Below are positions 3,383-46,456 of a DNA stretch of 64,000 bases, one piece after another. Below the pieces are notes generated by a model. That model worked only from the letters and a program-made list of their open reading frames with translations. It searched no databases and was not told the origin of the DNA. This stretch comes from Mizuhopecten yessoensis (Eukaryota). The translations under genes were made by a program, and so were the position numbers. Every line of letters starts with the position of its first letter. Position 1 is the first letter of the stretch. The stretch covers positions 983,570 through 1,047,569 of the forward strand of contig NW_018403789.1 in assembly GCF_002113885.1 (NCBI RefSeq). The letters run 5' to 3'.

Positions 3383-3492
3383 ACTCCTCCTTGTCATGGG
3401 CACGGTACACTAAACATGGGTATGTGTGTCTGCGATCAAGGGTATATAGGTGTCAACTGCTCGTTAAGAGAGATAGACCAATGTAAAGCTTC
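3383..3492 (+). CDS. Integrin-beta-like gene exon A (I-EGF1 and start of I-EGF2): TPPCHGHGTLNMGMCVCDQGYIGVNCSLREIDQCKAS
   Basis: T-rich tract with TTTAG acceptor and GTAAGT donor; phases 0/2. Resembles the integrin beta I-EGF1 pattern C..GxGT..CG.C.C..G..G..C. Confidence 0.9.
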
Positions 3493-3584
3493 GTAAGTAT
3501 TATTAACAATATTACATATTATGGTATGTTTTTTTAATTCTGATTGACTAATCCTTGGTCTAAGGTTCGCCAATATATAGTATA

Positions 3585-4006
3585 TCCACCGTCACGATCA
3601 CTGCGGTCGGAGACGGAATTATTGTGTCCCAAAATCTCGTACAGTGACCTATGAAAACCGGTGCTTTGGGAGGGTTTCGGCCACGTTGTTGAGTAGTGGC
3701 TTACCATCTGCTACCCGGAAGTCTAAACCCTGGCCAAATGTAAGAAGGTATAAAGACCCACCTCTTCACTGCTGCATTTTAGGCTCTTTGCACAGACGTC
3801 ATGTACACATCACCCTTATATATTTATGTATATACATATTGAGATTAATATCTCCATACGTAATGTTAAAAGGTGATTTGTTTGCCTTTTATGTTATCTA
3901 TTTTCACTAAGACTATTATCCATGTGTTGTAAAGTGCTTTAGAATAATTTTATAAATAATATAGGGCGCTATATAAATATTGTTTATTATAATATCATTA
4001 TTATTA
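3585..4006 (+). mobile_element. 3' fragment of an L2-clade LINE
   Basis: Clearly similar to 36350-36580 (TGTCCCAAAATC..GTGACCTATGAAAACCGGTGCTTTG). Ends in an L2-type tail GTAAAGTGCTTTAGA...GGCGCTATATAAAT...(ATT)n. Confidence 0.75.
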
Positions 4007-4158
4007 AATAGACCCTATATTTCTATTTTTGTCTTACACGTAACCATAGCGACATCATGTTTCTAAATTATGATCCGGATATTTCCTACCATAAACCACC
4101 CATTGATTCTTACTATTTACATATGTAATATATCATGACATAATATGTAATATAACAA

Positions 4159-4419
4159 TTAAGGACTTTTGTCGAGTCTGGTACTTCGTTATATCAAACA
4201 GATAGAGTGATATCGACCGAGGACCTACAAGCATGCTTCCCCTGTGTCTCATGCTACGGGGACATTGGCTATTTGATAAATGTTGCGCTCATCGCACCTC
4301 TTCGGATTTTTTTATTTTTTTGTCTCAATTGCTCATTTTTATATCATTCTGTCAGTTTCATATAAAAACGTAACTACAGTTTCATATAACAGCGTAACTA
4401 CATCGACAAAAGTCCTTAA
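4159..4419. mobile_element. MITE with TTAA termini (Kolobok- or piggyBac-type target)
   Basis: TTAAGGACTTTTGTCGA at 4159 is the reverse complement of TCGACAAAAGTCCTTAA ending at 4419, with further imperfect subterminal pairing. Confidence 0.7.
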
Positions 4420-5597
4420 TGGATTAGGATACAGATAGAAAGCCAGATCCTATTGCACGTCATAAACGTCTTCTAAAAACAGAAACAAGAAATTAATACT
4501 TTTTCATGTTTTTTGCCTTTTTGTTGTTTTTTGTTATCTCGTTTTCCTTCTCTTAAATTGATTCAGCTCAGCAATTAAAAATGTCCTTTTATTTATTTCA
4601 AGATTTCATATTCGATGATATTATGTTGTAACGCATATTTCAAAAAAAGGATGTGAAACAGCCACCACAGTACTCAATTTTTATTTCAAAATATGCTAAA
4701 ACAGCCAAAATAATCCCATTTCTGTTTTTGGATGCATGTGTAAATTAAACAGGCATATATATAAGGATGAAAAATGACAGAAATTCGATCGCCACTTAAA
4801 GATTATCAAAATAAAACGGAGGATTAAGTCAGTGGATTGTTTAAGCTCATTTAGAAAACAGCAAATTATTTTGGTGATTTACCGTATCCCTTTTGGTTCC
4901 CCAAAAATCTACTTTCGGTCAAACGTTTGCCTTAGTTTTTGCGCATTTGATACAATAAGATATCGTTAAACAAATTAAGGAGGTGAAAATCCGGATATAC
5001 CGGGGCAAAAATGTATCTACTATCTACTGCTTACCTTTGTAAAAACCCTAAGTTACAGCACGATTTTCAGTATAAGATAGCACGAAAATTGTACAGTCAC
5101 CTAAAATTTAGAGAACAGCGTATACATGTGGCTCTATAGCTTTCCATTCGATTGTTATCGCTGTTTTTCTCTTTCATTTTCCTGCTTTAATCTACTGCTG
5201 TATATTTAAAAAAAACTCTTATTACTACATGTTATGTAAAACAAGAAAATGACAAAGATATCTTATATATTGACAATTGCGTTAAAGATCTATGGGTTCC
5301 CATTCGATTGTTATCGATACTTTTCCCTTTCATTTGCCAGCTTCATATCTACTGCTTTTCTACAACTGCTCCATACATGAAAGCAAAGTCACAGAGGTGT
5401 CAAACAAAAAAATACATGTTACACCATCCCTTCATAAAAAAACCGATAGAATATTATTTTGTATCATTATGTTATCAATAACCCTGTCTGTTCTCACGTT
5501 TTATGTAAGAATCAATAACGTTATCTATTTCTATGTAAAACGGCATTTGTTCTTGTGATTGATCTTTTTTGTAATTGCTATTTCTATCATTTGACAG

Positions 5598-5670
5598 GGG
5601 AGCCAACTCTGTCTGCTCGGGACACGGGGATTGTATAGATGGAATGTGTCTGTGTCAGTCTAGAGGCGAT
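5598..5670 (+). CDS. Integrin-beta-like exon B (I-EGF2): GANSVCSGHGDCIDGMCLCQSRGD
   Basis: TTGACAG acceptor and GTGAGT donor; phases 2/0; CSG.G.C..G.C.C motif. Confidence 0.92.
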
Positions 5671-6489
5671 GTGAGTAAAACCTACGTTAGACAGAACACT
5701 CCAGTCTCTCAAACGTCCATTTAAACTAATGTATAGCCAGATCTGATTATCTTTATTTTTACAGTTTAATTATGTTTCGTTTCAAAGAGCCCCTCCCCCC
5801 GTTTTAGAGAACGGAAATGTTCGGTCTAAAATTCAAGAATGCGTACATGTCTGTCCATATGTCTGTTACATGAATAATTTAATTTAGTTAAACATTCCAT
5901 TCAAAATCTAATGTAAAGAGTATATCGCATACATTGACTTAAACAGATAGTTACAGGATATGATTAGTCTTAAACGTTGTGTTTGAGGATTATTATTCCT
6001 TTTACACATTTTAGGGGTTTAGATCAACACTTGGTAAAAACAATCCCGAATGCAGGTCTTTGATATGTCCTCGTTTGTTGACATTCCCGTGTGTTTCTAG
6101 TTGTTTACGTCCTGTTAAAAGGATTTAAAAAACATATTAGTAGCGAGTCTGAACTGGGTCGATCATCGGTACCGACCTTGTGAGAACGCCTGTCTAATAC
6201 TGTGGAGGTCTCGTGTTCCGTTTCGATTCTGGCTGCATTTTCCTACTATTGTGATACGTGAACGTGGCGTTGACGGGTTTCCTATGCAAACTGAGAATAT
6301 ACATTTATGTACCCACAGTAGTGAAATTTTGAAAGAAATGTGACATTTTTTTGTGATTCGTTATGAATTACAGGATACAATTCATTCTGCATACGATTAT
6401 AAGATGGAGGTAACACACACACACCCACACACACAGGTGATATCACCTAAATAATTTGGTTAAAGATACAGTATGCCGAAAAATAAATG

Positions 6490-6538
6490 TTACTGCATGA
6501 TACATCCTATTCGTCCCTTAAGGACTCATCAGTGAAGC
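6490..6538 (-). ncRNA. Degenerate hammerhead-ribozyme-like core
   Basis: Minus strand reads CTGATGA-GTCC-TTAAG-GGAC-GAAT, i.e. core plus stem II with GAAA changed to GAAT. Stems I and III are poor. Confidence 0.35.
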
Positions 6539-8394
6539 TAAGAGCCAAACAAATAGAAATTCAACTTGTCTAAACTACTGTTGAAACAAAGTGGCGGGAA
6601 CGTTTAAGCCTTATATGAATTATTAAAATTAGATGAGTAGATAACAAATCTATAAACTTAAAATGATATTCAGTGTGGGACTTTCACTAACTTTGAGGTA
6701 AATAAATCACCAGGATTACATGAAAGTGAGAACATTCGTTATGTATATATATATATAACGGAAACATTAATATTGTCGACACGAACATTTCTACACCGCG
6801 AAAGAAAAGTTGAAATTACGAAAATGCGCGAGGAATACACTGGAGTATAACATGGATTTATATAACGTGCGGAGACATTGCTTCTATTTTGTACCTTTTG
6901 AAGTATAAGCTAACGATACCCCACTGTACTATATAAATGTAACGTCGTTCAAATGGGTTCTTAATAGTATTCTAGTCAGCCTCAGGTTTTGTTATAATTT
7001 CCTCAATATTCCTGTAGTTGCACTGCAGGATCATTGTCAAGTGCTAAATTTAACTACAGCAAATTAGATTTGTCTTGAAAAGCAAGTTTGGCAAAGGCAA
7101 GAGAACTGTATGGGTTTAAATGCTCTGACATAAAAAGCTGTACGCCTAGGATAGTTATGTACATTTAATGGGAAACGTTTAACGACTTCACACTTAATAC
7201 AAAATGTATTTGAAAAGAACAATGTTGCTGGAAGTTCGGTTGCCCGTTTCCTATAATTTGAATATAATGCTGCATTGACGAGTTATCCCCCTTGTGTGTC
7301 CTTGATCGACGTTATAATATATCATATCAAGGAACATACCTGTGTTATTTACTCGTTAATTCAAAATGTTCATAATAATGCAAATTAGCTATGAAATCGA
7401 TATTTCCTGATGTATATCTGGCGCGTTATTCTGATAGCGCTGGAAGTTATCGCGACATCATATCTAATATATACATATAAATCATATCACATAACTGTAA
7501 CATATTCCTTATCATTTAGCCGGAGAACCAAATATAAGGACGAAGGCTGTTACGGCTCGAGGGCTGATTCAAAGATGGGAATTTAACTCATGTCATATTC
7601 TACGTCCTGTATATTTCTGTTTTTTACACAAACAAGAAATGTATGACACAAGTACAGAAGTTTTCATTTTTCTTTCAATTACATTTAGTTCAAAACCCTT
7701 TTGTAATGTGATTATACGCTGAAAAAGAACAAGTCAGTGCTGTACTAAATTGTCAGTCTGATCAACAACCCTGTGCCTTTTACGAAGTCGATAATCACTT
7801 CCGCGTGCATTGGAACGACTAATGTTGACAATAATGTTTCCACTGTAGTGTGCGGTCTTGCTCATTTCTAAAAAACATCGATATATTTAAGAAATTAGGA
7901 TAAATAGTCATTCAGATGTAAAACTTTAAAGCATTGGAGTGACTTGTTCTACATTCCTAACAGTTTTTCAGAATCCGTATAATGTTGTATTGTTAACCAA
8001 CTATCACTTGTCATATCATGGGTATCCTTTAGACATGTGCATCATAGCCTCAAATCCAGCAATAGGTTTTGATAGTTATAATTACTTTTCTATTTTTATT
8101 TATGTGTAAGTTGTTATATGTGTTTATGAAATTGTATTTCTTTATTTTGCCTGATTTATTTGTTACATTGATTCTGTTCATTTTAAAATTACTCTACCAG
8201 GATGCATGTCATGAAATCTGTATAATTTATAATTTATTCAAATGCGGATCGATTTCTCAATTTACACGTTTACTTTTATAGGTAACACCCCTCCCCTTCA
8301 TCACCCCCACCCCCTCCCACCTCACATTTCCTTCCCCAACCTATCTTTTTCCCTTTCCCAAAAACCATATACACTATTTTTACAATATGTATTG

Positions 8395-8476
8395 AGGAGA
8401 GGACTCTATTAAGTTGTAATAACTTGTTGTCCGATCCATTTGTATATTTGTACAATAAAATATGTTTAAACTAAAA
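8395..8476 (+). mobile_element. Probable CR1-type LINE 3' terminus
   Basis: Stem-loop GGAC..AAGTTGTAATAACTTG..GTCC followed by AATAAAATATGTTTAAACTAAAA. Family assignment is from recall only. Confidence 0.4.
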
Positions 8477-9207
8477 CATGGATATCCCTACTTATTACTC
8501 TCTACGATACTCATGGATGAGTCCTCCCAATATCAATTGAATGACCCAACCTACGATTAGTGGCAATACTAAACATTCCCTTTTGTGGGCAAAAGATGTA
8601 AGCAGAACCATAATTGTAGACAGACTGAACATTTTTTTGTCCAGATAAGCACTGGTATACAAACATTGCTTTATAATTAAGTAATTGAACAGCTGTAGTT
8701 TCCCTAAAACTGTCGTTGACCTTTCTCCCATTGATTACCACCTTCTCAGACACGTGTCTTTTTACCGATCTCGTCGTCGAGTCTAATCCAGAGTTGTGGA
8801 CGCCAGATAATCCATTGTTTCTCCCCTGTTGCATGTCGTCTGCCTGGATCAACTTCTATCTACGTTGATTTATCGGTTGCTACACTTTATCATACAAGGC
8901 TAGAGATAAAACATATATAACGCTGTCAGGGCAAATACGGATATCTACCAAAGATGTGATGTCAAATTGGGCGAGGGTGATTAAATTATTTTATAATCGA
9001 AAATACAAAAATCACGTGCTTTATATGAAGTTCATGATAAAAGACGTCATCCAAACATCCATCAAACATTATCCTATTGTCTATTGTAAATACTAATATA
9101 AGTAAGAAATGAAATGTATTCGAAAAGTAGTCTTTTACGATTTTTTTTTGTTATCTTAAGGCTATTGATCTGATATCCGACTTTCAGATGCTGTCCTTAG
9201 AGGTAAG

Positions 9208-9540
9208 TATATGACGGTTTGATATCAGGACCTTTATCAGCCCGAGACCATGATATTTGCCCGAGTGCTGCAGGCCTGAGGTCTGATATCAGGTCAAGGG
9301 CTGATAAAGGGTGTGCTATCAAATAGTCACATCATAACCCTTTTATCATACTTTCGAAAAATCAGACAAAAATAAATAAATTTAACAAATGTTGTTGTTG
9401 TTGCTGCTGCTATCGTCTGTGCCGGAAACCGGAGCGTCTAAACGTAAAATTGTAATCCGGAGTGAAGTACCCGGATAGTGATATCTAGCCCGGGTTGGTG
9501 TAAACAACTGTTTATCAGCCCGGGCACTGCTATGACAGCG
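9208..9540. mobile_element. Non-autonomous DNA element with a long terminal hairpin
   Basis: ~125-nt imperfect palindrome (TTTGATATC..CCTTTATCAGCCC ... GGGCTGATAAAGG..TATCAAA) and a third TTTATCAGCCC at ~9511. Confidence 0.55.
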
Positions 9541-11274
9541 CAAACAACACCTGTATTACATGGGCGAAATGTATATTATTAGAGACAAAAATGTGAAAAT
9601 GATATCCATCAGATGCTATGCTAATATTTAGGTATCTATGAGACACCATCTTGATATAAACAGTCAAACTGCGATGTTTTGAACCTGCGGGACTTTCGGC
9701 AACAATTCGAAACATCGGGACTTCGACTCACAAATATTGAACATCGATCAATCCTGTAAATGAGACTGAGAATGATTCTTATGTTACGAAACTCAAGCGA
9801 AGAAATTAAGTTTTCAATGTATAAATATTCATTTACAGAAATAATAATAGCCTGTTTATTAACATACTGTAGTTTGCGCTGTGATATTATCAAATTCAAA
9901 TAGTTTGTTTGTCAATTAAATTTCCGAAGCCTGAACTCCGTGTTGATGTGGTCTATCACGTGCGCCATGTTGCTGAGAGTGATTCCCGTGGGCCGTTTAA
10001 TTTCGAAAATGTTATGTATTGCAATCAATTTTATTTTTAAAAAGTCACACAATTAAGCTTATAGCATCATAAACCAATAAACATACATTCAATTCGTACA
10101 TACCATTTTCTTTGACATTGGCCTATGTTTACGATTGAAGAGTACTGATCAACGCTTATCGATTATCACTTTGTGTCATATATACTTCACACCGCTGTAT
10201 TTAAGTGTAACAATAGTGACTAAATCATTCATACCAAGTTGTGTCAGCATGGTCGCCAGTACTTTTCACTTGATGTCCGTGAAGGTGTAGAAATTACCAT
10301 GGGACATTAAATTGTTCTCGTACGGGTACATTGTTGACTTCGACTTATAAGTTCTAATTTCGAGTGTTTACTTCGAAAAAGAGAGAAATCCGATTCATTA
10401 AACGTGTAATATAAGGGAATCATTAGGACTTTGCCGTAGTCTTAGAAATTCGATATATGGAAATTTGACTGAATCAGATGTTGTACACACTTCTTTAGCA
10501 CGCTGTCCGGGTATCCACAAGACCTCAGTGATGTATTCTGTGTATATTGAACCTCTCGTCGCAAGGAATTCTACCTAACATTGGTCCTTTGGTTATAATT
10601 TATAAGGTTTCTATCGATAACATTATGGTACGAACTATTTGTTCACTTGTTGTGCTGTGCCAGTTTTATCATACAAATGGTAACTGATTACAGAAAATGC
10701 CTCCCGTTTTATACTGAATATTGTCAAATACATACTACTCGTACACAGTGTTGCTAACATAGCCAGCATGGTTACTATTCTAGCATCGGCAGACGGATAG
10801 ATTTTCCGGAGACAGTAGAGAATGCAATAGTAATTAAGTTGTCTGTTGTTTTCTATGTACAATGTGTGCAATCATTGTGGTTCTTAACGCAATGCCAGTC
10901 TGGCTCGAACTTAATTCACAACAATTGCTACAAATCCAAACATAGATTATTCTCTAAAATATCCAACAACCCCCCAGACCAAATAAAGACATGTTAGAAA
11001 GATACTTAACTCATAGCTTTCTTAAGTTAAATATTATATTTCAAACTCACCAATTTCCCCCTCCCCCCCCAAAAAAAAATACCCCAACAAGCCCACATAT
11101 ATACATACGTACAAACAAAATAAATCCAAATGTTAGAAAGATAATTCAGTTGTTTTTATCACATCATTTGTTTCTTTTTTTAACTGTAACAGACATCATA
11201 TGTATGGCATAGTTAAGTAAAACATGTATCCGGAATGGTGCCAAAGTAATCTAAACCGGCAACCCATCTTTATG

Positions 11275-11952
11275 ATTGGTCGGTTAGTTATCAAGGTTTT
11301 ACGTCCTATCAACAGCTAAACTCATTAAAGGATGTGCCTCAATGTGTGTTAGTGTGCTAGAGGCAGGGTATGTTGGTGTATTTGTCTCCTTGTGATAGCG
11401 CTGATCTGATGCCGACTTTATAGTGCTATATCACTAAGGATAAAGACTAATAATTTCTATAGTTGCATGGTCGGTGCCATGCAGAAAGCACACCGAGCCA
11501 TGCAGAAGGCACACCGAAAAATGAAGAAGGCACCGAGCACAGCATTACTCTCGGCCACATCATACTGACAACAGGTGAACAAGTTGTTGCCATTACCCTA
11601 AATGCTGAACGTTCAGCATGGAATAACAACTACCATTTTTTTTTGTCTCGGCTTTGGGACAGAACCTATTACCTACCTCACTAGGGCGCACGTTCAAAAT
11701 TATAACCAAAGTAAGGTATTGATAAGTAAGTCACTAGGAAATAACACGTCGTTAGAAGTAGAAAGAAATATCAAGATCCCTAAAATTGCAATGTGTGCAG
11801 CAGATTTATTTTGGTCGCTTTCGTGTCCTATAGTAGGGGGCACGAAAGCAAATCCCCATTTCCGTTGGAGAGTTCACTCATTAGTCTCCTCTTACGATAC
11901 GTTTAGGTAACGGCAAGGTGTATTCCTTTCTTGATCACCGACCTGTATGGAG
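11275..11952 (-). mobile_element. Composite tRNA-derived SINE (family A) with a 5' structured extension
   Basis: Homologous over its whole length to 13768-14350, and in the SINE part to the plus-strand copy at 59415-59760 (central GTTGTCAGTA(T)AATGTGACC.. and GCACTATAAAG; tail ..TTGATAGGACGT(T/A)AA). Confidence 0.75.
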
Positions 11953-13767
11953 TTTTGCATACGTTTACTTTGAAGTGGAAAGTGACGGTTATGTATCGCC
12001 GTTGTAATTCCTTTTATTATTGGTTTTTTTTACTGGAAGGCTCCGAAGGTTTAGGCAGTTAACATGGATTACGACTTCCTATTTGACTATATTTCTTAAA
12101 GAAACGAGACGCAGAGTCATTTATTGTCGATCGACGCACTGTAATATTAGGTCAACTATATTTTGAAATACAGACAGAAAGTCAAATATGTTCAGGGAAT
12201 ATCATGTTCAAAAGATTTTACATTTATTTGAACATTGTAAACCGGGGACTTAACAGAACACTTCGTAATGAATAAACAAATAAATAGTAAACAAACTACT
12301 TAATAATAGACATGGAGAGGTCAGCAATATTTTTGCCTGATATTGAGAAAATTTAGCATCAGCTTGTCAGGTAGGGAAATACAGAACATTAAGTGAGATA
12401 CTTGCCTCAAATATGTTTCCAAAGAAAAACTTTTGCCATTTATTTTCATGGACACCGTTGATGCAGTATTTGCAAATTTGTTCAGATTTAGTTTTTGCTA
12501 TGAGAGGAAAGCTTCAATGATACATTGGAAGAAAGGGGATAAACACGTATTGTTAACATTTATGCAGGAACTAAGACAATTGCACGTACACGTTTTTTGT
12601 TTTTTACAAGCAAAGAAATAAATATTCCAAAAACGCCAAGCAGCAACTCCAGAACATCGCTATTTGAACAAATAATGCATCGGGATCTTAAACTTTCTCT
12701 CCAGAGATCAACATTATTTAAGAAAAGCTTAGATGTGACTAGTGATTCCATATTGGTTACTATTTTTGACGCGAAATCACATCTATGTGAAACACTTTGA
12801 TTTATAAAGTGACGTATCTCTTTGGTTCAACGCTCAATTTCGAACAGAGTTTGTTAGAAAATCTGACATTGTGACATTGATAATCAACAGTATTGATAAA
12901 GGTCAGATGTAAAAGTGAACCAAAACACATCTTATCCACAGTTTATCAACACCGATCTGACGCATGAATACAATCTTCCAAGATTAATTTGTGTAATTTT
13001 TTTTTGTAATTTGAAATTAAACATTTTATAGCGAACAACGCCTGTAACATCCGGGGCTGATCAAATATTACAGCTATCATGAGCAATAAAAAAAATCATT
13101 AAGACCATGTTTAAACTCATAAAACAGATCCTTATGAAATATTTTTAAGGTAGAACCTTGGCAGTGTTTTATGGATACCTTTTGAATGGTTGTGTTTGTT
13201 TTGGCATCCGAAAACGAATTCCCATCGTGTATGACATTAAATAATAAAAATTGTTTGTCAATGATGCAATAACCTGTGACGATCAGTTTAATAGATTTCA
13301 TGAGAACGTTTACACCAAAATTTAAGAGAGTCTTCTAGAAAGTCCTCAATCTTGAAAATAGAAAAGGAAACTTAAAAAAAGAAAAAAATGGAGATGATTG
13401 CAATACTTTTGTCAAATGTATCTCTTTAGAACAACATTTGCTACTTACTTTTCTCGGAAATCGATAATTGATTCTCCTGTCAAACTACTTGTCCTCTTAA
13501 TTGCGTTGATAAATGTTTGACAAACCATATTCTGGCAATATATGACATCCTGTTTGCGTGAAAAACATCTTCAGTCAATTACTAGATACAGAACAAGGAC
13601 ACACGTTGCTCATTGTCAAGTAAACGTCCGGTCCCGGTGGGTACCTAGATATCTTAAGGATCAATTAGAATGCACTTTTGTGATAGACCCATGAAGCTAG
13701 CTGTTGACAGAACGTTAACACGTAGAAGGAAAAAAAAGGAATTTACGGTTGGGCTCGAAATCTTAAT

Positions 13768-14350
13768 GATTTGGTTTGGTTTAAGTTTGTTTAAAAGTTA
13801 AGGTAATTTAAGGACGTGCCTCCATGTGTGTAGTGTATGCGTGCTTGCGTGTATGTATGCAGGAGACTGGGTATGTTGGTTTATTTGCCTCCTTGTGATA
13901 GTGCGGATCTGGTGCCGACTTTATAGTGCTATCTCAATAAAATGCCATGCCGAAGGCACCAAACACAGTATTACGCCCGGTTACATTATACTGACAACGG
14001 GTGAACAAGTTGTTGCCATTCCTCTTAATGCTGAACGTTAAGCAGGGAATAACAATTATCGTTTTAAGGATATTTGTATGTACCGGCCTGGTGACATAAC
14101 CCATTGCCTTCCTCACGTGGGCGAACGCTTAACGTTCAAGCCAAAAGTGTGGTGTTGCCAAGAAAGACAAATATCCAAAGTATTGCAATGGGAAAAAGCA
14201 GGTTTATTTTGGTCGCCTTTGTGTCCCAAAATAGAGGACACCAAAGCAAATTCCCAAATCTGCAGGGGGTTCCAACATTAGTCGCCTCCTACGACACATG
14301 CAGGTGGTAACAGCAGGTGTATTCTTTTCCCCGATGGGGACCTGCAGGAA
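13768..14350 (-). mobile_element. Composite SINE family A, second copy
   Basis: Diverged full-length homologue of 11275-11952. Confidence 0.75.
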
Positions 14351-18496: not shown

Positions 18497-18501
18497 AGAG
18501 A

Positions 18502-30133: not shown

Positions 30134-30135
30134 CA

Positions 30136-33366: not shown

Positions 33367-33445
33367 GACCTGCACAGATTTTCCGGCACATTCTGTGAAT
33401 GTGATGATCACAGCTGTCCATACTTTGAAGATGAAGTTTGTGGGG
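33367..33445 (+). CDS. Integrin-beta-like exon C (I-EGF2/3): DLHRFSGTFCECDDHSCPYFEDEVCGG
   Basis: TTTCAG acceptor and GTAAGC donor; phases 0/1. Diagnostic integrin beta motif G.FCECD..SC.......CGG. Confidence 0.95.
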
Positions 33446-34757: not shown

Positions 34758-35675
34758 ATGAGTTGAATATTCTGTAACAAGTGTAGAGCGGTGCTTGATG
34801 AGTTAAATATTCTTAACAAGTGTAGAGCGGTGCTTTATGAGTTAAATATTCTGTAACAAGTTTAGAGCGGTGCTTGATGAGTTAAATATTCTGTAACAAG
34901 TGTAGAACGATGCTTGATGAGTTAAATATTCTGTATCAAGTGTAGAGCGGTGCTTGATGAGTGAAATATTCTTAACAAGTGTAGATCGGTGCTTTATGAG
35001 TTAAATATTCTGTTTCAAGTTTAGAGCGGTGCTTTATGAATTAAATATTCTGTATCAAGTTTAGAGCGGTGCTTTATGAATTAAATATTCTGTAACAAGC
35101 TTAGAGCGGTGCTTGATGAGTCAAATATTCTGTAACAAGTGTAGAGTGGTGCTTTATGAGTTAAATATTCTGTTTCAAGTTTAGAGCGGTGCTTGATGAG
35201 TTAAATATTCTGTTACAAGTTTAGAGCGGTGCTTGATGAGTTAAATATTCTGTTACAGGTGTAGAGCGGTGCTTGATGAGTTAAATATTCTGTAACAAGT
35301 TTAGAGCGGTGCTTGATGAGTTAAATATTCTGTAACAAGTGTAGAGTGGTGCTTTATGAGTTAAATATTCTGTATCAAGTGTAGAGCGGTGCTTGATGAG
35401 TTAAGTATTCTGTAACAAGTTTAGAGCGGTGCTATATGAATTAAATATTCTGTATCAAGTGTAGCGCGGTGCTTGATGAGTTCGATATTCTGTAACAAGT
35501 GTAGAGCGGTGCTTGATGAGTTAAATATTCTGTTACAAGTTTAGAGCGGTGCTTTATGAATTAAATATTCTGTATCAAGTGTAGAGCGGTGCTTGATGAG
35601 TTAAATATTCTGTAACAAGTGTAGAGCGGTGCTTGATGAGTTCAATATTCTGTAACAAGTGTTGAGCGGTGCTTG
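34758..35675. repeat. 40-bp minisatellite, ~23 copies
   Basis: Unit ATGAGTTAAATATTCTGTAACAAGTGTAGAGCGGTGCTTG. Confidence 0.97.
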
Positions 35676-36580
35676 TCATGCTAGACTTGTCACCTGCTTT
35701 TGACGTCATCGATCATGGCATACTTTACAAACGTCAGGATTTCTCTTATTCGGTGACTGGTGAAGCTCTATGTTGGATACAGTCTTATTAGAGTGAACGA
35801 TGACTGTGTGTTGGCATAGGATCTACCGCCTCACATGACAAAGTACTAGATTTCGGGGATCCTCAAGGGTCGGTGTCAGGACCACGAAAGTAATGAAAAT
35901 ATTTTATACCAATCGGAGAGATTAGTCGCCCCAATAACCTTCAATATCATTGTTAAAAACCTAGGGATATACTTTGATAGTTTATTGAACATGGCGAATC
36001 AAGTGAACGCTTTTGCCAAATCCTTTTACTACCACACCAGAAACATCGGTTGTATTCGGCAGTTTATAACTGCAGATGCATGCAAAGTTTTGGTTCATCT
36101 ACTTTTTACCTATCGGTCGGACTACGGTAATACCCTGCTCTGTGGTATATCTGACAACCTAACTTGTCGTCTGCGGAGGGTCTATAACACTGCAGCACGT
36201 CTGGTTACTAGTACTCCAAAGAGGGAGCACGTCACAACAGTGCTATATATTAATTGTACTGGCTACCTGTACGATACAGGTCGCAGTACAAAATGATGGT
36301 GTGCACACACAAGGCACTGAATGAAACAGCTTCCCAGTACCTGCATCAGCCATCACGATCATTGCGGTCGGACACATAATCTTTGTTATGTGTCCCAAAA
36401 TCGCGTTCTGTGACCTATGAAAACCGGTGCTTTGAGAGGGTTTCGGTCACGTTGAGAAATAGCTTACATGTACCATCTGCTATTAGAAAGTCATACAACC
36501 TGGCAAAAAGATCAAGAAGGATATAAAGACCCACGACTTTTAAGGCGTCATGTACACACCACCCTTGATATATTTATGTA
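35655..36580 (+). mobile_element. Decayed, 5'-truncated L2-clade LINE (reverse transcriptase and C-terminal region)
   Basis: Translated motifs AVLVMLDLSPAFDVIDHGIL, FGDPQGSVSGP, KNLGIYFDS and DYGNTLLCG...YNTAARLV. Stops, frameshifts and loss of the YADD region. Confidence 0.88.
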
Positions 36581-36646
36581 CAGGACACGACAGGGGCTGG
36601 TATGAATGTGGTATGTGTATTGTATAGGTTTAATCATCTTTTACAG

Positions 36647-36756
36647 GACACGACAGGGGCTGGTGTGAATGCGGTACATGTCGATGTAACAGTGGATTTT
36701 TGGGCGAGGATTGCTCCTGTCCTACAGCTATAGACCGGTGTACAGCGGACGACGGG
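36647..36756 (+). CDS. Integrin-beta-like exon D (I-EGF3/4): HDRGWCECGTCRCNSGFLGEDCSCPTAIDRCTADDG
   Basis: TTTTACAG acceptor and GTACGT donor; phases 1/0; canonical I-EGF cysteine spacing. Confidence 0.95.
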
Positions 36757-37354
36757 GTACGTCAACCACGGGGTTTCGGGTACTGGTTGAAAGGGTACGC
36801 TGTTCAAAGTAATGGGAATCAAATAAGGTAGCTAATATAAAATGAGAGTCTAAAGAGTCACGACGATGATATGAAGGTAGGTTTCGACAAGGAGGTTGGG
36901 GTACTGCGACCACAGTATATTTGGACACGAACATCTCGGTTAAACCGTGGTTCCGACGATCACAACAGAATTGAATTACGTTGGTTACAGAAGGTTAGGG
37001 TACATTACGACGATAAAATGAGGATGGGTTTACGAAAGCCACATATTTGCAAAGACAGACTGCGGGATTTGCATGGTAAATAATACTAAAATGGTTCGGT
37101 TCTAACACTTGCCTACAAGGACATCTTGGCTATAGAAAAATACTAACGGTATAGCATAGGGGATACTAACGTGGCAACATGTCTGGTAACTTGACAGGAA
37201 ATACATCTTAAAGCAATATGAGAAACATAACTTATCGATTTAGAAATTTTGGAGCTTATGAGAAAAAGTGAATATGTAATGACGTAACTAATACTTGTAT
37301 TATATAACTTCTATACTAGGTATCCTCTTAGTCATAACAGTCTGTTGATAGATG

Positions 37355-37431
37355 CCAAAGGTAATGACAGCCGATCTACACTGTATAACACTCGACACGA
37401 GTGTTACAGACCGGCTGTCATTAACTTTGGT
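37355..37431. repeat. ~75-nt imperfect palindrome, likely a MITE remnant
   Basis: CCAAAGGTAATGACAGCCG..TAACACTCG-ACA-CGAGTGTTA..CGGCTGTCATTAACTTTGG. Confidence 0.7.
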
Positions 37432-37847
37432 GCCTGTTTTCTTTCCTTGGTTACATGTAAAGCATCATGGCTGTTCGTGAAGTAAAAAGGTTTGTTTGAG
37501 TTTTCCATAATCGCCCGAGTGATATCCAATTAAGAGGATAACTACACACATAGAAATATTTGTATTAGTTGAGCTTCAACCTGTTGATCAGGTAAATTGT
37601 TAAGATTTCTTTCAAGTATCTAGCTTTAATTAACTAAAATGCAGGAAGCAGCGATTTAGTGTGTATTATATACATATATATCATAAATTTGAAGGGTTGT
37701 CGGGTGGCGTGATGGATAATGTAATTTAAAACTTCAGTTAAACCTGTCATTCGGGAACCTTCCCAGACATATATGTTAACGTCGGACACACTGCTAGGAG
37801 CTATTGGTTGTATCTTTTAGTCACATACAGACGTAAAACGTCATTTA

Positions 37848-38975
37848 TTAGCTCACCGGGTCCAAAGGACCAAGGTGAGCTTATGCCATACCGTGGCGTC
37901 CGTCGTCCGTCCGTCCGTCGTCCGTCGTCCGTCCGTCAACAATTTCTTTAAACGACTTCTTCTTCTTAAACACTTATTGGAATTTAACTAAATTTGACTG
38001 GAAGCATCCCTAGGTGGTGTGGATTCAAAATTGTACAAATGGTTGGGCTGACCCCCCAGGGGGCTGAGGGGCGGGGCAATAAGGGGGCAATTTGGCTATA
38101 TGCTTTAAGCGACTTCTTCTCTGGAACTAAGAGATAGATATCAACCATATTTGACTGGAAGCATCCCTAGGTGGTGGGGATTCAAAATTGTACAAATTGT
38201 GGGGCTGACCCCCCAGGGGGCTGAGGGCTGGGCCAAAAGGGGGCAATTTGGCTATATTGCCTTAAATGACTTCTTCCGTAAAACTATACCATGGATATTG
38301 ATCATATTTGGTCAGAAGCATTCATGGGAGGCAGGGATCCAAAATTGTACAAATGGTCGGGCTGACCCCCCGGGCTAAGGGGTGGGGTCTTTTTTTTTTT
38401 TACTTGAAAATAGTTGAGATCCCAACCATATAACCATATATACAATTGTTGAGTATAACGAGAGGAATGCACATTTGCTTCCAGGATGGCCCTAGGGTCT
38501 GGCCCCACCCTTGGAGACTTAACCCCTGGGTCATAACTTTGAAACGGTTAATATCCCCACCCCAAAACTATATATACAATTGTTGGGCATAAAGAGACGA
38601 ATGCAGTCATGATATTAGAATTGACCCAAGGGTCTGCCCCACCCTTGCAGACATAACCCCTGGGTCATAACTTTGAAACGGTTGAGATCCCCACCCCAAA
38701 ACTTAATATACAAATGCTGGGCAAAAAGAGACAAATGCAGTCATGATATTAGAATTGATCCTGGGGTCTGGCCACAACCCTAGGGACCTAGTTTCTGAGT
38801 CACAGCTTGGAAACAGTTGAGATCCCCACCCCATAACCTTACATAAAATTGCTGTGCATAAAAAAATGATTGGCCTTGAGGTCTGGCATATTCCGTTGGA
38901 TCTCATTTGGAGAATATTTTGCCATGATTGCTTAGATATCCAGGTGAGCGATACAGGCCCTCTGGGCCTCTTGTT
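37848..38975 (+). mobile_element. Non-autonomous Helentron-type (HINE / pearl-like) element
   Basis: 5' TT-AGCTCACC-hairpin-GGTGAGCT, (GTCC/GTC)n microsatellite, internal tandem cores of ~165 and ~120 bp, and 3' CAGGTGAGC plus hairpin AGGCCCTCTGGGCCT-CTTGTT. Inserted in a T-rich site of a ~39-bp repeat. Confidence 0.88.
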
Positions 38976-39254
38976 TCCTTTTAGTCACATACAGACGTAA
39001 AACATCAATTATTTCCTTTTAGTCACATACAGACGTAAAACGTCAATTATTTCCTTTTATTTGTTCATCAGCATATTATGATGAATTAGTATATAAGTTT
39101 TGTATTTATTCATTTCTCGGCGTCGGTGTTGCTAAATTTAATGTAAGATTCAACATTTGTGGATAAAAGGGCACGTTGAATTTTAGGAAAGATTTTAAAC
39201 TAGCAGGGGCACTGGGCAGATAGCGGTCGTCGCTGCACCCAGCATGTTGGGCCT

Positions 39255-42200
39255 GGGGACTTCCCTGCCGTTATGGGAGGACTACCCTGTCGTTATGGGG
39301 GGGCTACCCTGTCGTTATGGGGGGATTACCCTGTCGTTATGGGGGGACTACCCTGCCGTTATGGAGGGATTGCCCTGTCGTTATGGGGGGACTNGGGGGG
39401 ACTACCCTGTCGTTATGGGGGGACTACCCTGTCGTTATGGGGGGACTACCCTGTCGTTATGGGGGGACTACCCTGTAGTTATGGGGGGATTATCCTGTCG
39501 TTATGGGGGGACTCCCCTGTACTTATGGGGGAACTACCCTGTCGTTATGGGGGGACTATCCTGTCGTTATGGGGGGACTACCCTGTCGTTATGGAGGGAT
39601 TGCCCTGTCGTTATGGGGGGACTACCCTGTCGTTATAGGGGAACTACCCTGTCGTTATGGGGGCACTACCCTGTCGTTATGGGGGACTACCTTGTCGTTA
39701 TGGGGGGACTATCTTGTCGTTATTGGGGACTACCCTGTCGTTATGGGGGGACTACCCTGTCGTTATGGGGGGACNTTGTCGTTATGGGGTGACTATCCTG
39801 ACGTTATGGGGGGACTACCCTGTCGTTATGGGGGGACTACCCTGTCGTTATAGGGGAACTACCCTGTCGTTATGGGGGCACTACCCTGTCGTTATGGGGG
39901 ACTACCTTGTCGTTATGGGGGGACTATCTTGTCGTTATTGGGGACTACCCTGTCGTTATGGGGGGACTACCCTGTCGTTATGGGGGGACTACCCTGTCGT
40001 TATGGGGGGACTACCCTGTCGTTATGGGGGACTACCCTGTCGTTATGGGGGATTACCCTGTCGTTATGGGGGGGACTACCCTGTCGTTATGGGGGGACTA
40101 CCTTGTCGTAATGGGGGACTATCCTGTCGTTATGGGGGGATTACCCTGTCGTTATGGGGGGACTACCCTGTCGTTATTGGGGACTACCCTGTCGTTATGG
40201 GGACTACCCTGTCGTTATGGGGGGACTACCCTGTCGTTATAGGGGGACTACCCTGTCGTTATTGGGGCACTACCCTGTCGTTATGGGGGGACAACCCTGT
40301 CGTTATGGGGGGACTATCCTGTCGTTATGGGGGACTACCCTGTCGTTATGGGGGACTACCCTGTCGTTATGGGGGTCTACCCTGTCGTTATGGGGGGACT
40401 ACCCTGTCGTTATGGGAGGACTACCATGTCGTTATGGGGAACTACCCTGTCGTTATGAGGGGACTATCCTGTCGTTATGGGGGGACTACCATGTCGTTAT
40501 GGGGGGACTACCATGTCGTTATGGGGGGACTACCATGTCGTTATGGGGGGACTACCATGTCGTTATGGGGAAATACTCTGTCGTTATGGAGGGACTATCC
40601 TGTCGTTATGGGGGGACTACCTTGTCGTTATGGGGGGACTATCCTGTCGTTATGGGGGGACTACCAAGTCGTTATGGGGGGACTACCATGTCGTTATGGG
40701 GAAATACTCTGTCGTTATGGAGGGACTATCCTGTCGTTATGGGGGGACTACCTTGTCGTTATGGGGGGACTATCCTGTCGTTATGGGTGGACTACCCTGT
40801 CGTTATGGGGAAACTACCTTGTCGTTATGGGGGGACTATCCTGTCGTTATGGGGGGACTACCTTGTCGTTATGGGGGGACTATCATGTCGTTATGGGGGG
40901 ACTACCCTGCCGTTATGGGGGGAACTACCCTGTCGTTATGGGGGATATACCCTGTCATTATGGGGGGACTACCCTGTCGTTAACGGGGGACTACCCTGTC
41001 TACTCGTTATGGGGGAACTACCCTGTCGTTATAGGGGGACTACCCTGTCGTTATAGGGGGACTACCCTGTCGTTATAGGGGTACTACCCTGTCGTTATGG
41101 GGGAACTACCCTGTCGTTATGGGGGAAATTCCCTGTCGTTATGGGGAACTTCCTCGTCGTTATGGGGGGACTCCCTTGTCGTTATGGGGGGACTACTCTG
41201 TCGTTATGGGGGACTAACATGTCGTTATGGGGGACTCCCATGTCGTTATGGGGGACCACCCTGTCGTTATGGGGATCTACCCAGTCGTTATGGGGGGACT
41301 ACCCTGTCGGTTTGGGGGGGACTACCCTGTCGTTGTGGGGGACCTACCCTGTCGTTATAGGGGTACTACCCTGTCGTTATGGGGGGGACTATCCTGTCGT
41401 TGTGGGAGGACTACCCTGTCGGTATGGGGGGACTACCCTGTAGTTATGGGGGGATTATCCTGTCGTTATGGGGGACCTCCCCTGTCGTTATGGGGAACGA
41501 CCTCGTCGTTATGGGGGGACTCCCCTGTACTTATGGGGGAACTACCCTGTCGTTGTGGGGGACCTACCCTGTCGTTATGGGAGGACTTCCCTGTCGTTAT
41601 GGGGGGAGTACCCTGTCGTTATGGGGGTACTACCCTGTCGTTAGGGGGGAACTATCCTGTCGTTATGGGGGGCCTACCCTGTCGTGATGGGGGAACTTCC
41701 CGGTCGTTATGGGGGGACTACCATGTCCTTACCGGGCGAATACCATGTCGTTATGGGGGGACTACCATGTCCTTACCGGGCGAATACCATGTCGTTATGG
41801 GGGGCTACCTTGTCGTTATGGGGAACTACCCTGTCGTTATAGGGGGCCTCCCCTGTCGTTAGGGGGGGACTACCTTGTCGTTATGGCGGGACTACCCTGT
41901 CGTTACTGGGGAACTACCCTGTCGACTCGTTATGGGGGACTACCCTGGCGTTATGGGGGAACTACCCTATCGACTCGTTATGGGGGGACGACCCTGTCGT
42001 TGTGGGGGGACTATCCTGTCGGTATAGGGGGACTATCCTGTCATTATTGGGGAACTACCCTGTCGTTCCGGGGGGATTAACCTGTCGTTATGGGGGAACT
42101 TCCCTGTCGTTATGGGGGACTAACATGTCGTTATGGGGGACTCCCATGTCGTTATGGGGGACTACCTCGTCGTTATGGGGGGACTCCCTTGTCGTTATGG

Positions 42201-44098
42201 GGGGACTATCCTGCGGTTATGGGAGGACTACCCTGCCGTTATGGGGGGACTCCCCTGTACTTATGGGGGGACTACCCTGGCGTTATGGGGGGACTACCCT
42301 ATCGACTCGTTATGGGGGGCCTACCTTGTCGTTATGGGGGGACTAACCTGTCGTTATAGGGGTACTGCCCTGTCGTTATGGGGGAAATTCCCTGTCGTTA
42401 TGGGGAACGACCTCGTCGTTATGGGGGGACTCCCCTTTCGTTATGGGGGGACTTTCCTGTCGTTATGGGGGGAGTACCCTGTCGTTATGGGGGACCTACC
42501 CTGTCGTTATAGGGGAACTACCCTGTCGTTCCGGGGGGATTAACCTGTCGTTATGGGGGAACTACCCTGTCGTTATGGGGGGACTACCCTGTCGTTATGG
42601 GGGAAATACCCTGTCGTTATGGGGAACTACCTCGTCGTTATGGGGGGACTACCCTGTCGTTATGGGGGGACTATCCTGTCGTTATGGGAGGACTACCCTG
42701 TCGTTATGGGGGACTACCATGTCGTTATGGGGGACTACCCTGTCGTTATGGGGGGACTACCCTGTCGACTCGTTATGGGGGGACTACCCTGTCGACTCGT
42801 TAGGGGGGAACTACCCTGTCGTTATGGGGGGACTCCCCTGTCGTTAGGGGGGCCTACCCTGTCGTTATGGGGGAACTACCCTGTCGTTTTGGGGGACTAC
42901 ACTGTAGACTCGTTATGGGGGAACTACCCTGTCGTCATGGGGGGACTACCCTGTCGTTATGGGGGGATTACCCTGTCGTTATGGGGGGAACTACCCTGTC
43001 GACTCGTTATGGGGGGACTACCCTGTCGGTATGGGGGGACTACCCTGTCGTTATAGGGGGACTATCCTGTCGATATGGGGGTACTACCCTGTCGTTATGG
43101 GGGGACTGCCCTGTCGTTATGGGGGACTACCCTGTCGGCTCGTTATGGTGGAACTACCCTGTCGTTATGTGGGGACTACCCTGTCGTTATGGGGGAAATA
43201 CCCTGTCGTTACGGGGAACTACCTCGTCGTTATGGGGGGCCTACCCTGTCGTTATGGGGGACTACCCTGTCGTTATGGGGGAAATACCCTGTCGTTATGG
43301 GGGACTACCATGTCGTGATGGGGGACTACCCTGTCGTTATGGGGGACTACCCTGTCGACTTGATATGGGGGTACTACCCTGTCGTTATGGGGGACTATCA
43401 TGTCGTTATGGGGGGACTACCCTGCCGTTATGGGGGGACTACCTTGTCGTTATGGGGGGACTACCCTGTCGGTATGGGGGGACTATCCTGTCGTTATGGG
43501 GGGACTACCCTGGCGTTATGGGGGGACTACTCTGTCGTTATGGGGGGACTACCCTGCCGTTATGGGGGGACTACCTTGTCGTTATGGGGGGACTACCCTG
43601 TCGTTAGGGGGGGACTACCCTGTCGTTATGGGGGGAACTTCCCTGTCGTTATGTTGGGACTACCCTGTCGCTATGGGGGGGACTACCCTGTCGTTATGGG
43701 GGAACTTCCCTGTCGTTATGGGGAACTACCTCGTCGTTATGGGGGGACTACCCTGTCGTTATGGTGGACTACCCTGTCGTTATGGGGGACTACCATGTCG
43801 TGATGGGGGACTACCCTGTCGTTATGGGGGGACTCCCCTGTCGTTATGGGGGAACTACCCTGTCGTTATGTTGGGACTACCCTGTCGTTATGGGGGGGAC
43901 TACCCTGTCGTTATTGGGGGACTACCCTGTCGTTATGGGGGACTACCCTGTCGACTCGTTATGGTGGAACTACCCTGTCGTTATGTTGGGACTACCCTGT
44001 CGTTATGGGGGGAACTACCCTGTCGTTATGTTGGGACTACCCTGTCGTTATGGGGGGACTACCCTGTCGTTATGGGGGGACTACCCTGTCGTTATGGA
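39255..44098. repeat. G-rich 21-22-bp minisatellite, ~220 copies
   Basis: Unit TTATGGGGGGACTACCCTGTCG. It accounts for all the GGLPCRY/WGDYPVVM ORFs. Confidence 0.99.
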
Positions 44099-44186
44099 AA
44101 ATCTAGGTTAATTATTATTCGTCTCCGCTCTACTGTTTTTTTTATATAATATTTGTAACTGCAACTATTACTTTGTCTATCCATAG

Positions 44187-44315
44187 CGTATTTGTAGTGG
44201 AAACGGAAACTGTCGCTGTAACAGGTGTGTCTGTATCAACGGGTACATGGGACCCACGTGTAGTGAGGGTAGGGAGATCGTACCGAAACAATCCTCATCC
44301 AAGTCATTCATGTCG
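44187..44315 (+). CDS. Integrin-beta-like exon E (I-EGF4 plus linker): RICSGNGNCRCNRCVCINGYMGPTCSEGREIVPKQSSSKSFMS
   Basis: CCATAG acceptor and GTAAGT donor; phases 0/0. Confidence 0.92.
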
Positions 44316-44645
44316 GTAAGTTTTACCTTGAACGTAGCACTACGAAACATAAAACTACAGAGTCGTCAATATAATCAACATGGAAGTCCATCGTGAGCGA
44401 TGACGTAGTCAGTACGCCTGAGATGTGATCGTAGACCAAAAGCTTTTGCACAGATGACGCCACACTTTGGACGGGCGGCAACATATATGTATCTTATCAT
44501 TTGATTCCATAAAGAAATATATATTGTTGTTGATCAGCTTTCTGTTATTTCAGTTTAATCAAAAATAGCAAAACACCAAATATTATTTTGAATATATAGT
44601 CCAATCATACTCTGCTGACAAATTATTTCTGTTATAAATTTGCAG

Positions 44646-44778
44646 GATTTTACCGACGTGTGTAATTTATGGATACCGTGTGTTCTGTGTGTGGGTTTTA
44701 ATTCCGGTGAGAAAGATGTTGAAGAATGCGAAGAAGATTGCAGCATAAATAGAATTCACATGGTAGACGCATTGCCAG
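44646..44778 (+). CDS. Integrin-beta-like exon F (beta-tail, N-terminal half): DFTDVCNLWIPCVLCVGFNSGEKDVEECEEDCSINRIHMVDALP
   Basis: TTTGCAG acceptor and GTAAGC donor; phases 0/1. Beta-tail motif C.....CV.C..F..GE......C...C. Confidence 0.93.
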
Positions 44779-45564
44779 GTAAGCCAGTTTATGAACGAGG
44801 AATGTTGTGTTATCTTTTCAACAAGATTATGAACCAAATCTAGTGATGATTTACCCAGATTTAGTCACTGTATGATGCAGCGATAGCCTGGTTACGCGTA
44901 TCACTGAGAGTTTATATTAACACGCGCTAGAACGATACGTAAAGAAAGACAACTCCGTTGCATGCAGGTCAATGGGCGCATTATCTTTCCCTCTTCACTA
45001 ATAATAAAGAAGGTAGGGGGAGAGGGCGTTTGTCCACAGCAATTAAACAGCAAGTATAGGTGTAGTAATTTATAATTAATTTGCATATTCATCTTTAACA
45101 ATATTGTTTTTCACGCTTGAATTCAATTTTAAGATAATTGAACTGAATGTCAAATGCATATGTTCAGTTTAACGCGCAGTAGAGATTACCAGTCCATGGT
45201 AGGTCTTACTGAAAGCATTAATGTGATTTGCCTTCCTAAAATGTGTACAAATAAACTTGTTGATTCTTAAATTGCCTTGAAGGATTGATAGTGAAATATA
45301 AAATCGGCAGAAATGATTCGTCATTGTCTGAAATAGATTTCTGTCGAGGGTTAGAAATTCAAAGAATATTTCCCTCGAGACAGATAATGTTCTGCCATAG
45401 TTAACGTTGAATTACCGGTCAGAACGCCCTTTTCTGCAAGAGGACCTTTTATCTGTCTAGATGTTTACAAAATCATAGTTTACAATTCAAAGTGGTAAAC
45501 ATATGATGGTTGTGTCAGAAGTATTATGACTCCCATTTCATTTTCTTTCTTTTTTATGTTTCAG

Positions 45565-45678
45565 ACACACCAGACAACCGTGTTTGTCGACATAAAGATA
45601 CGGATCAGTGTATGGTCACATTCTCACACACCGACCAGTCATTTTACGCCATGTCCGTGTATGTTCAACAAACCAAAA
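45565..45678 (+). CDS. Integrin-beta-like exon G (beta-tail, C-terminal half): DTPDNRVCRHKDTDQCMVTFSHTDQSFYAMSVYVQQTK
   Basis: Long T tract with TTTCAG acceptor and GTAAGG donor; phases 1/1. Motif C..KD.D.C...F......V.V. Confidence 0.93.
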
Positions 45679-46274
45679 GTAAGGCTTACATTTTGTAAAA
45701 TTTCTTCGCGCATGCGCACTTCTGATCGCTCCAATTTATGTCATTCAACGGTTAGAAAAATCCGCATTATTTCAATTAGACAATATTAGTATTTTGATAA
45801 AAAAAAACAAAAAAAAAACCGTTGAATCCATCCTTCAAGAAACTGCTGATGAATACTGCAAAGTGCACATTAAAGAAATAAAGATAATACAGACATTTTA
45901 GCTTGAGGGTATTTTGTTTTTTCGTGTTTCTCGGAGTTTAAAGACCCAACATCGTACATATTAAGCAACCACAAAAGGCAGATTATTCTCTTAGATGAGA
46001 ATGTGATTTTTTTTTTATTATAATACAGAATTCCCTTCGCGTACCACTAATGAAGGGAGAGAACTCTAACAGAAGATAACTTGAAAACCCAAATGATTTT
46101 AGATTACAGAAAGAAAGCCCTTCGCGTACCACTATTGAAGGGAGACAACTCTGATAGTTGCTAATGTGAAAAAATCCATTAATTTTAAATCACAGAAAGC
46201 CCTCCGCTTACCACTAACGAAGGGAGAGAACTTTAATAGATAAGAATACATAAAAAACACATTTTTCTTTTCAG

Positions 46275-46456
46275 AATGCCCTCCGCCTACTCTTACCCCG
46301 GAGGCTGGAGTGATGAAAGCTAACCAGTTATCCGATGATACAAACAATGACGACGATGACACAAAAGACGGATCCAGTGGATCATCTAAAGTCTATTACA
46401 CTTGCAATCTGCTATACTTATTGTGCCTAATGTTCACGATATCTGTTCTGTCATGA
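46275..46456 (+). CDS. Integrin-beta-like terminal exon H: KCPPPTLTPEAGVMKANQLSDDTNNDDDDTKDGSSGSSKVYYTCNLLYLLCLMFTISVLS* (GPI-signal-like end)
   Basis: TTTTCAG acceptor, phase 1. Supplies the final beta-tail CP, then a polar linker, small residues, a 15-aa hydrophobic end and TGA at 46454-46456. Confidence 0.88.

Follow-up and report, generated by a model that had tools for sequence, protein, structure and literature searches.

Can the stalk of an integrin β subunit persist as a membrane protein of its own, after both the ligand-binding head and the cytoplasmic tail have been lost? The question is raised by a gene on the + strand of a 64,000-nucleotide stretch of DNA from Mizuhopecten yessoensis, the Yesso scallop (G000:C462:983570-1047569, here called the window; unprefixed coordinates count from its first letter). 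The genome is assembled as 988 Mb in 82,659 contigs. A first-pass annotation of the sequence had described the product as an integrin β 'leg' that ends in a signal for a glycosylphosphatidylinositol (GPI) anchor where a transmembrane (TM) helix and NPxY tail would be expected. Our preferred reading, to which we give a probability of roughly 0.6, is that this is a scallop-family gene derived from integrin β that encodes a headless, tail-less stalk with a predicted GPI anchor. Its exon structure, transcription and domain content, the loss of the head and tail, and purifying selection on it within scallops are observed.

The first-pass annotation had joined eight exons between 3383 and 46456 (+) into an open reading frame (ORF) of 309 codons. 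These exons stand as proposed, with AG/GT borders, compatible phases and the full 309 codons. The C-terminal sequence is as quoted there; its peptide fragments all lie on the + strand at 46283-46453, and the stop codon of the ORF is the TGA at 46454-46456. The ORF is not complete at this length: two further coding exons add a signal-peptide-like N-terminus of 23 residues and bring the protein to 332 residues. The complete gene has ten coding exons, as obtained by mapping a database protein exactly to the genome with GT-AG junctions. This protein, P0001 (XP_021360936.1 / OWF55818.1 / A0A210R4I6), was the one match (332 residues, 100% identical) when the 44-residue β-tail exon was compared with 1.84 billion representative proteins. 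Exons were searched singly with Pfam, and the joined protein was used as the P0001 entry. The features of the gene are as follows (I-EGF, integrin-type epidermal growth factor-like domain).

G000:C462:979754-979796, + strand, 3.8 kb upstream of the window: coding exon 1, MGLCRLTCWIVAFG (exact P0001 mapping).
665-690, + strand: coding exon 2, end of the putative signal peptide, VVGHLALTQ (exact P0001 mapping, GT-AG).
3383-3492, + strand: coding exon 3, C-terminal two thirds of I-EGF1 and start of I-EGF2 (Pfam I-EGF_1).
5598-5670, + strand: coding exon 4, I-EGF2, with the final codons RGD at 5662-5670 (Pfam EGF_integrin).
33367-33445, + strand: coding exon 5, end of I-EGF2 and start of I-EGF3 (mapping; colinear with integrin β2).
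36647-36756, + strand: coding exon 6, I-EGF3 and start of I-EGF4 (exon-wise Pfam search, P0001 mapping).
44187-44315, + strand: coding exon 7, I-EGF4 and a variable Ser/Lys-rich link (RNA joint 44315/44646; β2 alignment).
44646-44778, + strand: coding exon 8, first half of the β-tail (Pfam Integrin_B_tail positions 1-39; RNA joints on both sides).
45565-45678, + strand: coding exon 9, second half of the β-tail (Pfam Integrin_B_tail positions 47-82; RNA joints on both sides).
46275-46456, + strand: last coding exon (10), with a phase-1 start, K-CP and an acidic linker to 46366.
46367-46387, + strand: small-residue cluster DGSSGSS in the last exon, candidate omega (ω) site.
46388-46408, + strand: spacer KVYYTCN in the last exon, seven residues.
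46409-46453, + strand: hydrophobic C-terminus LLYLLCLMFTISVLS in the last exon, 15 residues.
46454-46456, + strand: stop codon TGA, directly after the hydrophobic run.
46457-48658, + strand: probable 3' untranslated region (UTR), unspliced (RNA contigs; AATAAA at 48633).

The encoded protein is thus ordered as putative signal peptide, partial I-EGF1, I-EGF2-4, β-tail, acidic linker, small-residue cluster, seven-residue spacer and 15-residue hydrophobic end. The N-terminal 23 residues were taken as a putative signal peptide by look: they carry a basic residue and a hydrophobic core, with A-x-T preceding Q23, and they are conserved in the relatives described below. The domain content proposed in the first pass was recovered by Pfam on the full protein, with Integrin_B_tail at 52.8 bits (cut-off 33.6) and EGF_integrin at 46.4 bits, also above its cut-off. 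For exon 3 alone, I-EGF_1 scored 29.2 bits (cut-off 26.1) over profile positions 10-29 of 29; on the full protein it fell to 23.7 bits, below the cut-off, and the first part of I-EGF1 is absent. The proposed colinearity with I-EGF1-4 and the β-tail was also found, the protein aligning to residues 436-674 of integrin β2 (E = 5e-25) and exon 3 beginning the alignment at residue 436. In each of the three species counted, the mature part contains 34 cysteines, which is an even number. Mislabelling by annotation pipelines had been foreseen and has occurred, since the database names are "integrin beta-3-like" and "Integrin beta-3".

A structural model was calculated with AlphaFold2 (AF2). An alignment of five sequences gave an unusable model (predicted local distance difference test, pLDDT, of 41) and was replaced by one of 28 sequences, for which the mean pLDDT is 78, with values of 84-94 in the EGF and β-tail parts. 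The Ser/Lys link (residues 181-190) has low pLDDT and is disordered, the acidic linker (residues 284-312) is disordered, and a terminal helix is modelled at residues 313-331.

The head of the integrin was sought by a six-frame search of the whole genome. The βI domain (PF00362) gave nine matches, all on contig C4918 and none on C462; the PSI domain (PF17205) had no match on C462 or in P0001, and PF00362 was likewise not matched by the full protein in Pfam. The putative signal peptide joins I-EGF1 directly. A TM or NPxY exon, the absence of which had been claimed, did not emerge: the cytoplasmic-tail domain PF08725 was matched on contig C4918 alone and had no match on C462 even at E ≤ 10, and a motif scan returned chance hits only. 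The protein is truly headless, with no PSI, hybrid or βI domain, and it has no cytoplasmic tail. Without the βI domain, the normal α/β ligand-binding head cannot form.

What became of the TM exon is suggested by the canonical integrin β genes of the same genome. Two such genes lie in tandem on C4918, each encoding a 23-residue TM helix, a WK/WR membrane-proximal segment and NPxY-type motifs. In the canonical C4918 gene the β-tail exon ends in phase 1 and the next exon starts AG|AATGCCCT, which encodes E-C-P followed by the TM helix and the start of the tail. The gene studied here agrees with the canonical genes in where the intron ahead of the 'CP' motif lies and in its phase, and the first eight bases of the last exon in the window are identical to those of the canonical TM exon. 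After C-P the exon diverges into about 28 polar or acidic residues, DGSSGSS, KVYYTCN, the 15-residue hydrophobic run and the stop. Because the intron phase and first bases are those of the canonical TM exon while the later content differs, the last exon has been remodelled and not replaced. It had no Pfam match in the exon-by-exon search; searched alone against a collection of 5.8 billion proteins it also gave no match, although this search sees only proteins of similar length and the blank therefore means little.

Two candidates for a residual tail were considered and rejected. Reading through the stop would add 52 codons that contain 'WKLL'; these are unlike the canonical WK...DRRE segment and were ascribed to chance. 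The motif 'NPIY' at 63748-63852 (+) lies beyond the convergent cytochrome P450 gene, in a span in which about two to three such motifs are expected by chance.

P0001, followed by an alignment built from its first matches, was used to search for relatives, and these were found only in scallops; the search covers proteins of 183-581 residues that share short words with the query, so that distant or other-sized relatives may escape. Those found are from Ylistrum balloti (333 residues, 74% identical), Pecten maximus (329 residues, 71% identical) and Argopecten irradians (283 residues, a model without the last exon), together with a full-length relative on a transcript contig (L012, protein P0005). 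After the scallop group the score drops from 529 to 121 bits, to ordinary integrin fragments. The Ylistrum and Pecten genes have an identical ten-exon plan with nearly equal exon lengths, and a convergent P450 gene adjoins the Ylistrum gene too. In the L012 transcript, several in-frame stops precede the start codon and another stop follows the hydrophobic end; the headless, tail-less build is therefore seen on one mRNA molecule.

The first-pass annotation had looked to orthologues for a conserved GPI-type end and a ratio of nonsynonymous to synonymous substitution (dN/dS) below 1, and both are found. Ylistrum, Pecten and L012 have the acidic linker, the small-residue cluster, the short spacer and a hydrophobic end of 16-23 residues, and no integrin tail; these features are kept in the three relatives though individual residues vary, while the truncated Argopecten model is uninformative on this point. 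Nei-Gojobori counts put dN/dS at 0.11-0.16 over the whole gene, at 0.18-0.37 in the last exon and at 0.15-0.32 in the part from the ω site to the end; synonymous divergence (dS) in these comparisons is near 1 or saturated. Judged by these ratios, the tail is under constraint that is looser than that on the domains, as expected for a signal set by physical properties and not by exact sequence.

In general, GPI-anchored proteins have an N-terminal signal, a polar stretch, small residues at ω and ω+2, a spacer of 7-8 residues and a hydrophobic end of 15-20 residues behind which nothing follows; the wider limits expected of a precursor are 5-10 residues for the spacer and about 12-20 for the hydrophobic end. 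The four full-length sequences were checked for such a C-terminus with a rule-of-thumb script. Their C-terminal hydrophobic runs are of 15, 16, 17 and 20-23 residues (mean Kyte-Doolittle values 1.5-2.3), with none or one charged residue and, in all four, no cytoplasmic residues behind. Small-residue clusters (GSS/SGS, NGS, GAG/SHS) lie 24-34 residues from the end, again in four of four, and small residues at ω and ω+2, a short spacer and a flexible polar stretch ahead were found. As far as sequence can tell, four scallop species share the headless build with a GPI-type end, and all GPI-attachment features that can be checked by script are present in them. GPI anchoring is a well-founded prediction.

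Some points weigh against this reading. The feature check rests on a rule-of-thumb script. In Argopecten the last exon was not found within 10 kb downstream by tblastn with four tails or by a scan for a 'CP' exon, which could reflect a longer intron, a loss or an assembly problem. The best Foldseek matches of the AF2 model are integrin β chains (E = 2e-22), but the alignment behind the model consists of integrin βs, so that this match is partly built in and is supporting, not independent. Finally, the uncharged hydrophobic end together with its spacer amounts to 21 residues in Mizuhopecten and 23 in P0005, and could span a membrane.

This last point bears on the possibility that the hydrophobic C-terminus stays uncleaved and acts as a tail-less single-pass anchor, left over from the integrin TM helix when a premature stop arose. 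In keeping with such a remnant, the last exon corresponds by position to the TM exon as its homologue, and AF2 places a helix at residues 313-331. The strict hydrophobic run, however, measures 15-17 residues in three species against 23 in the canonical paralogue, with Ser, Thr, Tyr and Cys among its residues. Behind it there are neither basic stop-transfer residues nor cytoplasmic ones, whereas the canonical paralogue has a basic anchor, and a conserved small-residue cluster stands at the distance of an ω site. Given this short run, broken up by Ser, Thr and Tyr and lacking the basic flank of the canonical paralogue, we consider an uncleaved anchor, the main rival, less likely.

A soluble end product similar to vertebrate ITGBL1 was also weighed, in which a weak signal would lead to secretion, shedding, or retention and degradation in the endoplasmic reticulum (ER), and the gene would in truth serve to make a secreted piece of stalk. 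Two crustacean entries, P0027 and P0028, are headless without an anchor and as recorded end at 'CPA' or a few residues later, which offers a precedent. In the scallops, on the other hand, four species retain the hydrophobic end, in its position and followed by the stop, despite a dS of about 1 or more, and the segment from ω to the end has the low dN/dS given above; a useless tail should have decayed. Selection on the tail makes a secreted fate unlikely.

At least 70% of the sampled words of 46200-46900 were present in 19 public runs from 12 studies of the same organism, of which one is recorded as RNA and most others were taken as RNA by size. Two contig sets and two raw-read RNA runs were mapped on 44120-50100. 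The first-pass splice junctions in this interval were reproduced: 44315/44646, 44778/45565 and 45678/46275, each GT..AG, occur in RNA contigs of two runs. One of these joints, at exon 9, is additionally present in three raw reads (run X24); the first mates of the raw reads lie on the minus strand, as for + strand RNA in a standard stranded library. One RNA contig, judged by its length, reaches about 46516, some 242 nt beyond the start of the last exon, and a second spans 46422-46746 without a gap. Contigs therefore run unspliced past 46454-46456, and the stop codon is in the mRNA with unspliced sequence after it. At the other end, 830 nt of a 1353-nt RNA contig lie ahead of the exon that begins at 44187; subtraction of 441 coding bases leaves about 389 nt before the ATG, which fits a 5' UTR and is far too short for an integrin head. 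The gene is transcribed.

In agreement with the first-pass annotation, no transcript splices the last exon to a TM or NPxY exon: in the RNA mapped, neither a joint nor a listed loose end leads from exon 9 or 10 to another target. The idea that the GPI-type end belongs to one isoform only, with a TM/NPxY tail on another transcript or a head in unassembled DNA, is very improbable, for although an N gap (1919-2688) does interrupt the intron that separates exon 2 from the first EGF exon, and although few RNA runs were used and contigs drop rare variants, the 1.2-Mb contig has no Integrin_b_cyt, Integrin_beta or PSI match, three other species share the headless, tail-less model, the L012 mRNA is closed by stops on both sides and neither exon is joined elsewhere.

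RNA contigs at 46877-48344 and 47182-48658 have a depth like that of the coding exons, and depth drops after about 48.3-48.7 kb. This suggests a 3' UTR of up to 2.2 kb, of uncertain length because the contigs are unstranded and the raw reads have no coverage of 46920-48320. Within it, in all four runs, a short dispersed repeat at 46712-46906 shows RNA depth in the thousands and is flanked on either side by many loose ends; it breaks transcript assemblies, and a second such element lies at about 49700-50100.

The preferred reading may be set out as a sequence of steps. An ancestral integrin β would have lost its head (PSI, hybrid and βI domains) and its cytoplasmic tail, while the signal peptide, most of I-EGF1, I-EGF2-4, the β-tail and a remodelled TM exon would have been kept. 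The remodelled exon supplies a disordered acidic linker, small residues, a spacer of 7-8 residues and a hydrophobic C-terminus of 15-20 residues, the layout read by the GPI transamidase. In the ER the hydrophobic end would be cut at a small residue about 24-28 from the end and replaced by GPI lipid. The stalk would then stand on the outer leaflet without a link to talin, kindlin or the cytoskeleton. Its role is a matter for speculation; the likeliest candidates are that it might be a surface-tethered modulator or partner acting through the stalk, or that it might show its invariant RGD loop to true integrins.

The RGD in question (5662-5670, residues 82-84 of P0001) lies in the long loop of I-EGF2, as part of SRGDDLHRFSG. 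That whole stretch shows no change among five of five scallop sequences, although much of the protein is equally conserved, and the canonical scallop paralogue differs in having an unrelated loop at this position. The I-EGF2 RGD could be an integrin-binding site and is a candidate for one. That the GPI-anchored stalk with its invariant RGD acts on true integrins, either as an RGD ligand in cis or trans or as a stalk mimic that competes for the leg contacts of α subunits, is a tentative and rather doubtful proposal. If true, it would describe a lipid-raft-tethered regulator of integrin activation made from integrin itself, a type of regulator not described so far.

Comparison with known proteins places the gene apart from its nearest counterparts. 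With canonical integrin β subunits (human β2 and β3 and the C4918 genes) it shares the colinear I-EGF1-4 and β-tail, at 30-35% identity to solved β chains and, for the scallop paralogues on C4918, at 45-50% identity in single EGF exons. Unlike them it has no PSI, hybrid or βI domain, hence no ligand site of the metal-ion-dependent adhesion type (MIDAS) and no main α interface; it also has no 23-residue TM helix, no WK/HDRRE segment and no NPxY. The Ser/Lys-rich link in exon 7 stands in place of the CxxCxxC junction between I-EGF4 and the β-tail of canonical subunits.

Vertebrate ITGBL1 (TIED) is a secreted protein with a signal peptide and ten I-EGF repeats, and with no β-tail, no hydrophobic C-terminus and no cytoplasmic tail; it has been reported to modulate integrin activity. 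In concept it is the closest known protein. The scallop protein resembles it in being headless, in having integrin-type EGF repeats after a putative signal peptide and in lacking a cytoplasmic tail. It differs in its β-tail, in having about four EGF domains and in its hydrophobic C-terminus, that is, in keeping the native order of I-EGF1-4 and β-tail with a GPI-type end. No ITGBL1-like entry was among the near matches of the relative search. On this comparison of sequences, the scallop gene is evidently not an ITGBL1 orthologue, and an independent origin is likely.

The crustacean entries P0027, P0028 and P0022 ('integrin beta pat-3-like / beta-4-like') have EGF repeats, a beta-tail-like end and no βI Pfam match, and the start of P0027 resembles a signal peptide. 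Their identity to the scallop protein is about 31-35%; as recorded, they end at or just after 'CP' and lack both the linker and the hydrophobic end. These entries may represent secreted headless stalks in a second phylum, or incomplete gene models.

A literature search found nothing on the accessions, on a GPI-type integrin β derivative or on a GPI protein from an integrin β stalk. The sequence is already public under an automatic name, and headless integrin-β-like proteins are known; the build with a GPI-type end is new. The integrin stalk is usually seen only as a lever between head and tail, and here it is kept by selection for its own sake: scallop genera with synonymous sites near saturation still keep it after loss of both. 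The gene offers a natural experiment on what I-EGF and β-tail domains do alone, and an example of a TM exon remodelled into a GPI-type signal, a membrane helix being swapped for a likely lipid anchor. It is also a warning that, in mollusc genomes, the label 'integrin beta-3-like' can be carried by a protein that is no receptor. The finding has limited reach, since the gene seems restricted to one bivalve family, its anchor is a prediction and its role is speculative.

A third integrin-β-like locus lies elsewhere in the genome, at 250000-258000 of contig C4734 (G000; L005). It has I-EGF exons and, at 31.4 bits, the best Integrin_B_tail match of the genome, with no βI or cytoplasmic-tail match on the contig; it may be a headless derivative or a gene split by the assembly.

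The introns of the gene contain tandem repeats. Between exons 2 and 3, the N gap lies inside a 42-bp array (869-3080), part of which has GTAAGT in its unit, and a 40-bp array is present at 34758-35675. One extra copy of the acceptor and start of exon 6 occurs at 36583-36600. A GC-rich satellite (GC 56%) with a 22-bp unit and about 219 copies occupies 39255-44097 and ends 90 bp before exon 7. In other scallops, intronic tandem arrays have a unit that carries an exon edge (L009 61398-63305; L011 14879-22522 and 65907-70055). In Pecten, the first six codons of exon 7 recur about 30 times, at a 45-bp period, just upstream of the real exon. In Argopecten, the first seven codons of exon 3 recur about 78 times at a period of 99 bp, and the last codons of exon 7 about 80 times at a period of 42 bp, after the real exon.

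Downstream, a convergent cytochrome P450 gene occupies 49500-63900 on the minus strand, with CYP4-like exons at 62739-62497, 59972-59838 and 58533-58270. Its intron at 51.7-56.7 kb is filled with a satellite, the translation of which repeats a P450-like peptide. The exon-edge arrays of the other scallops look like the same phenomenon as the P450 exon-end satellite of the window.

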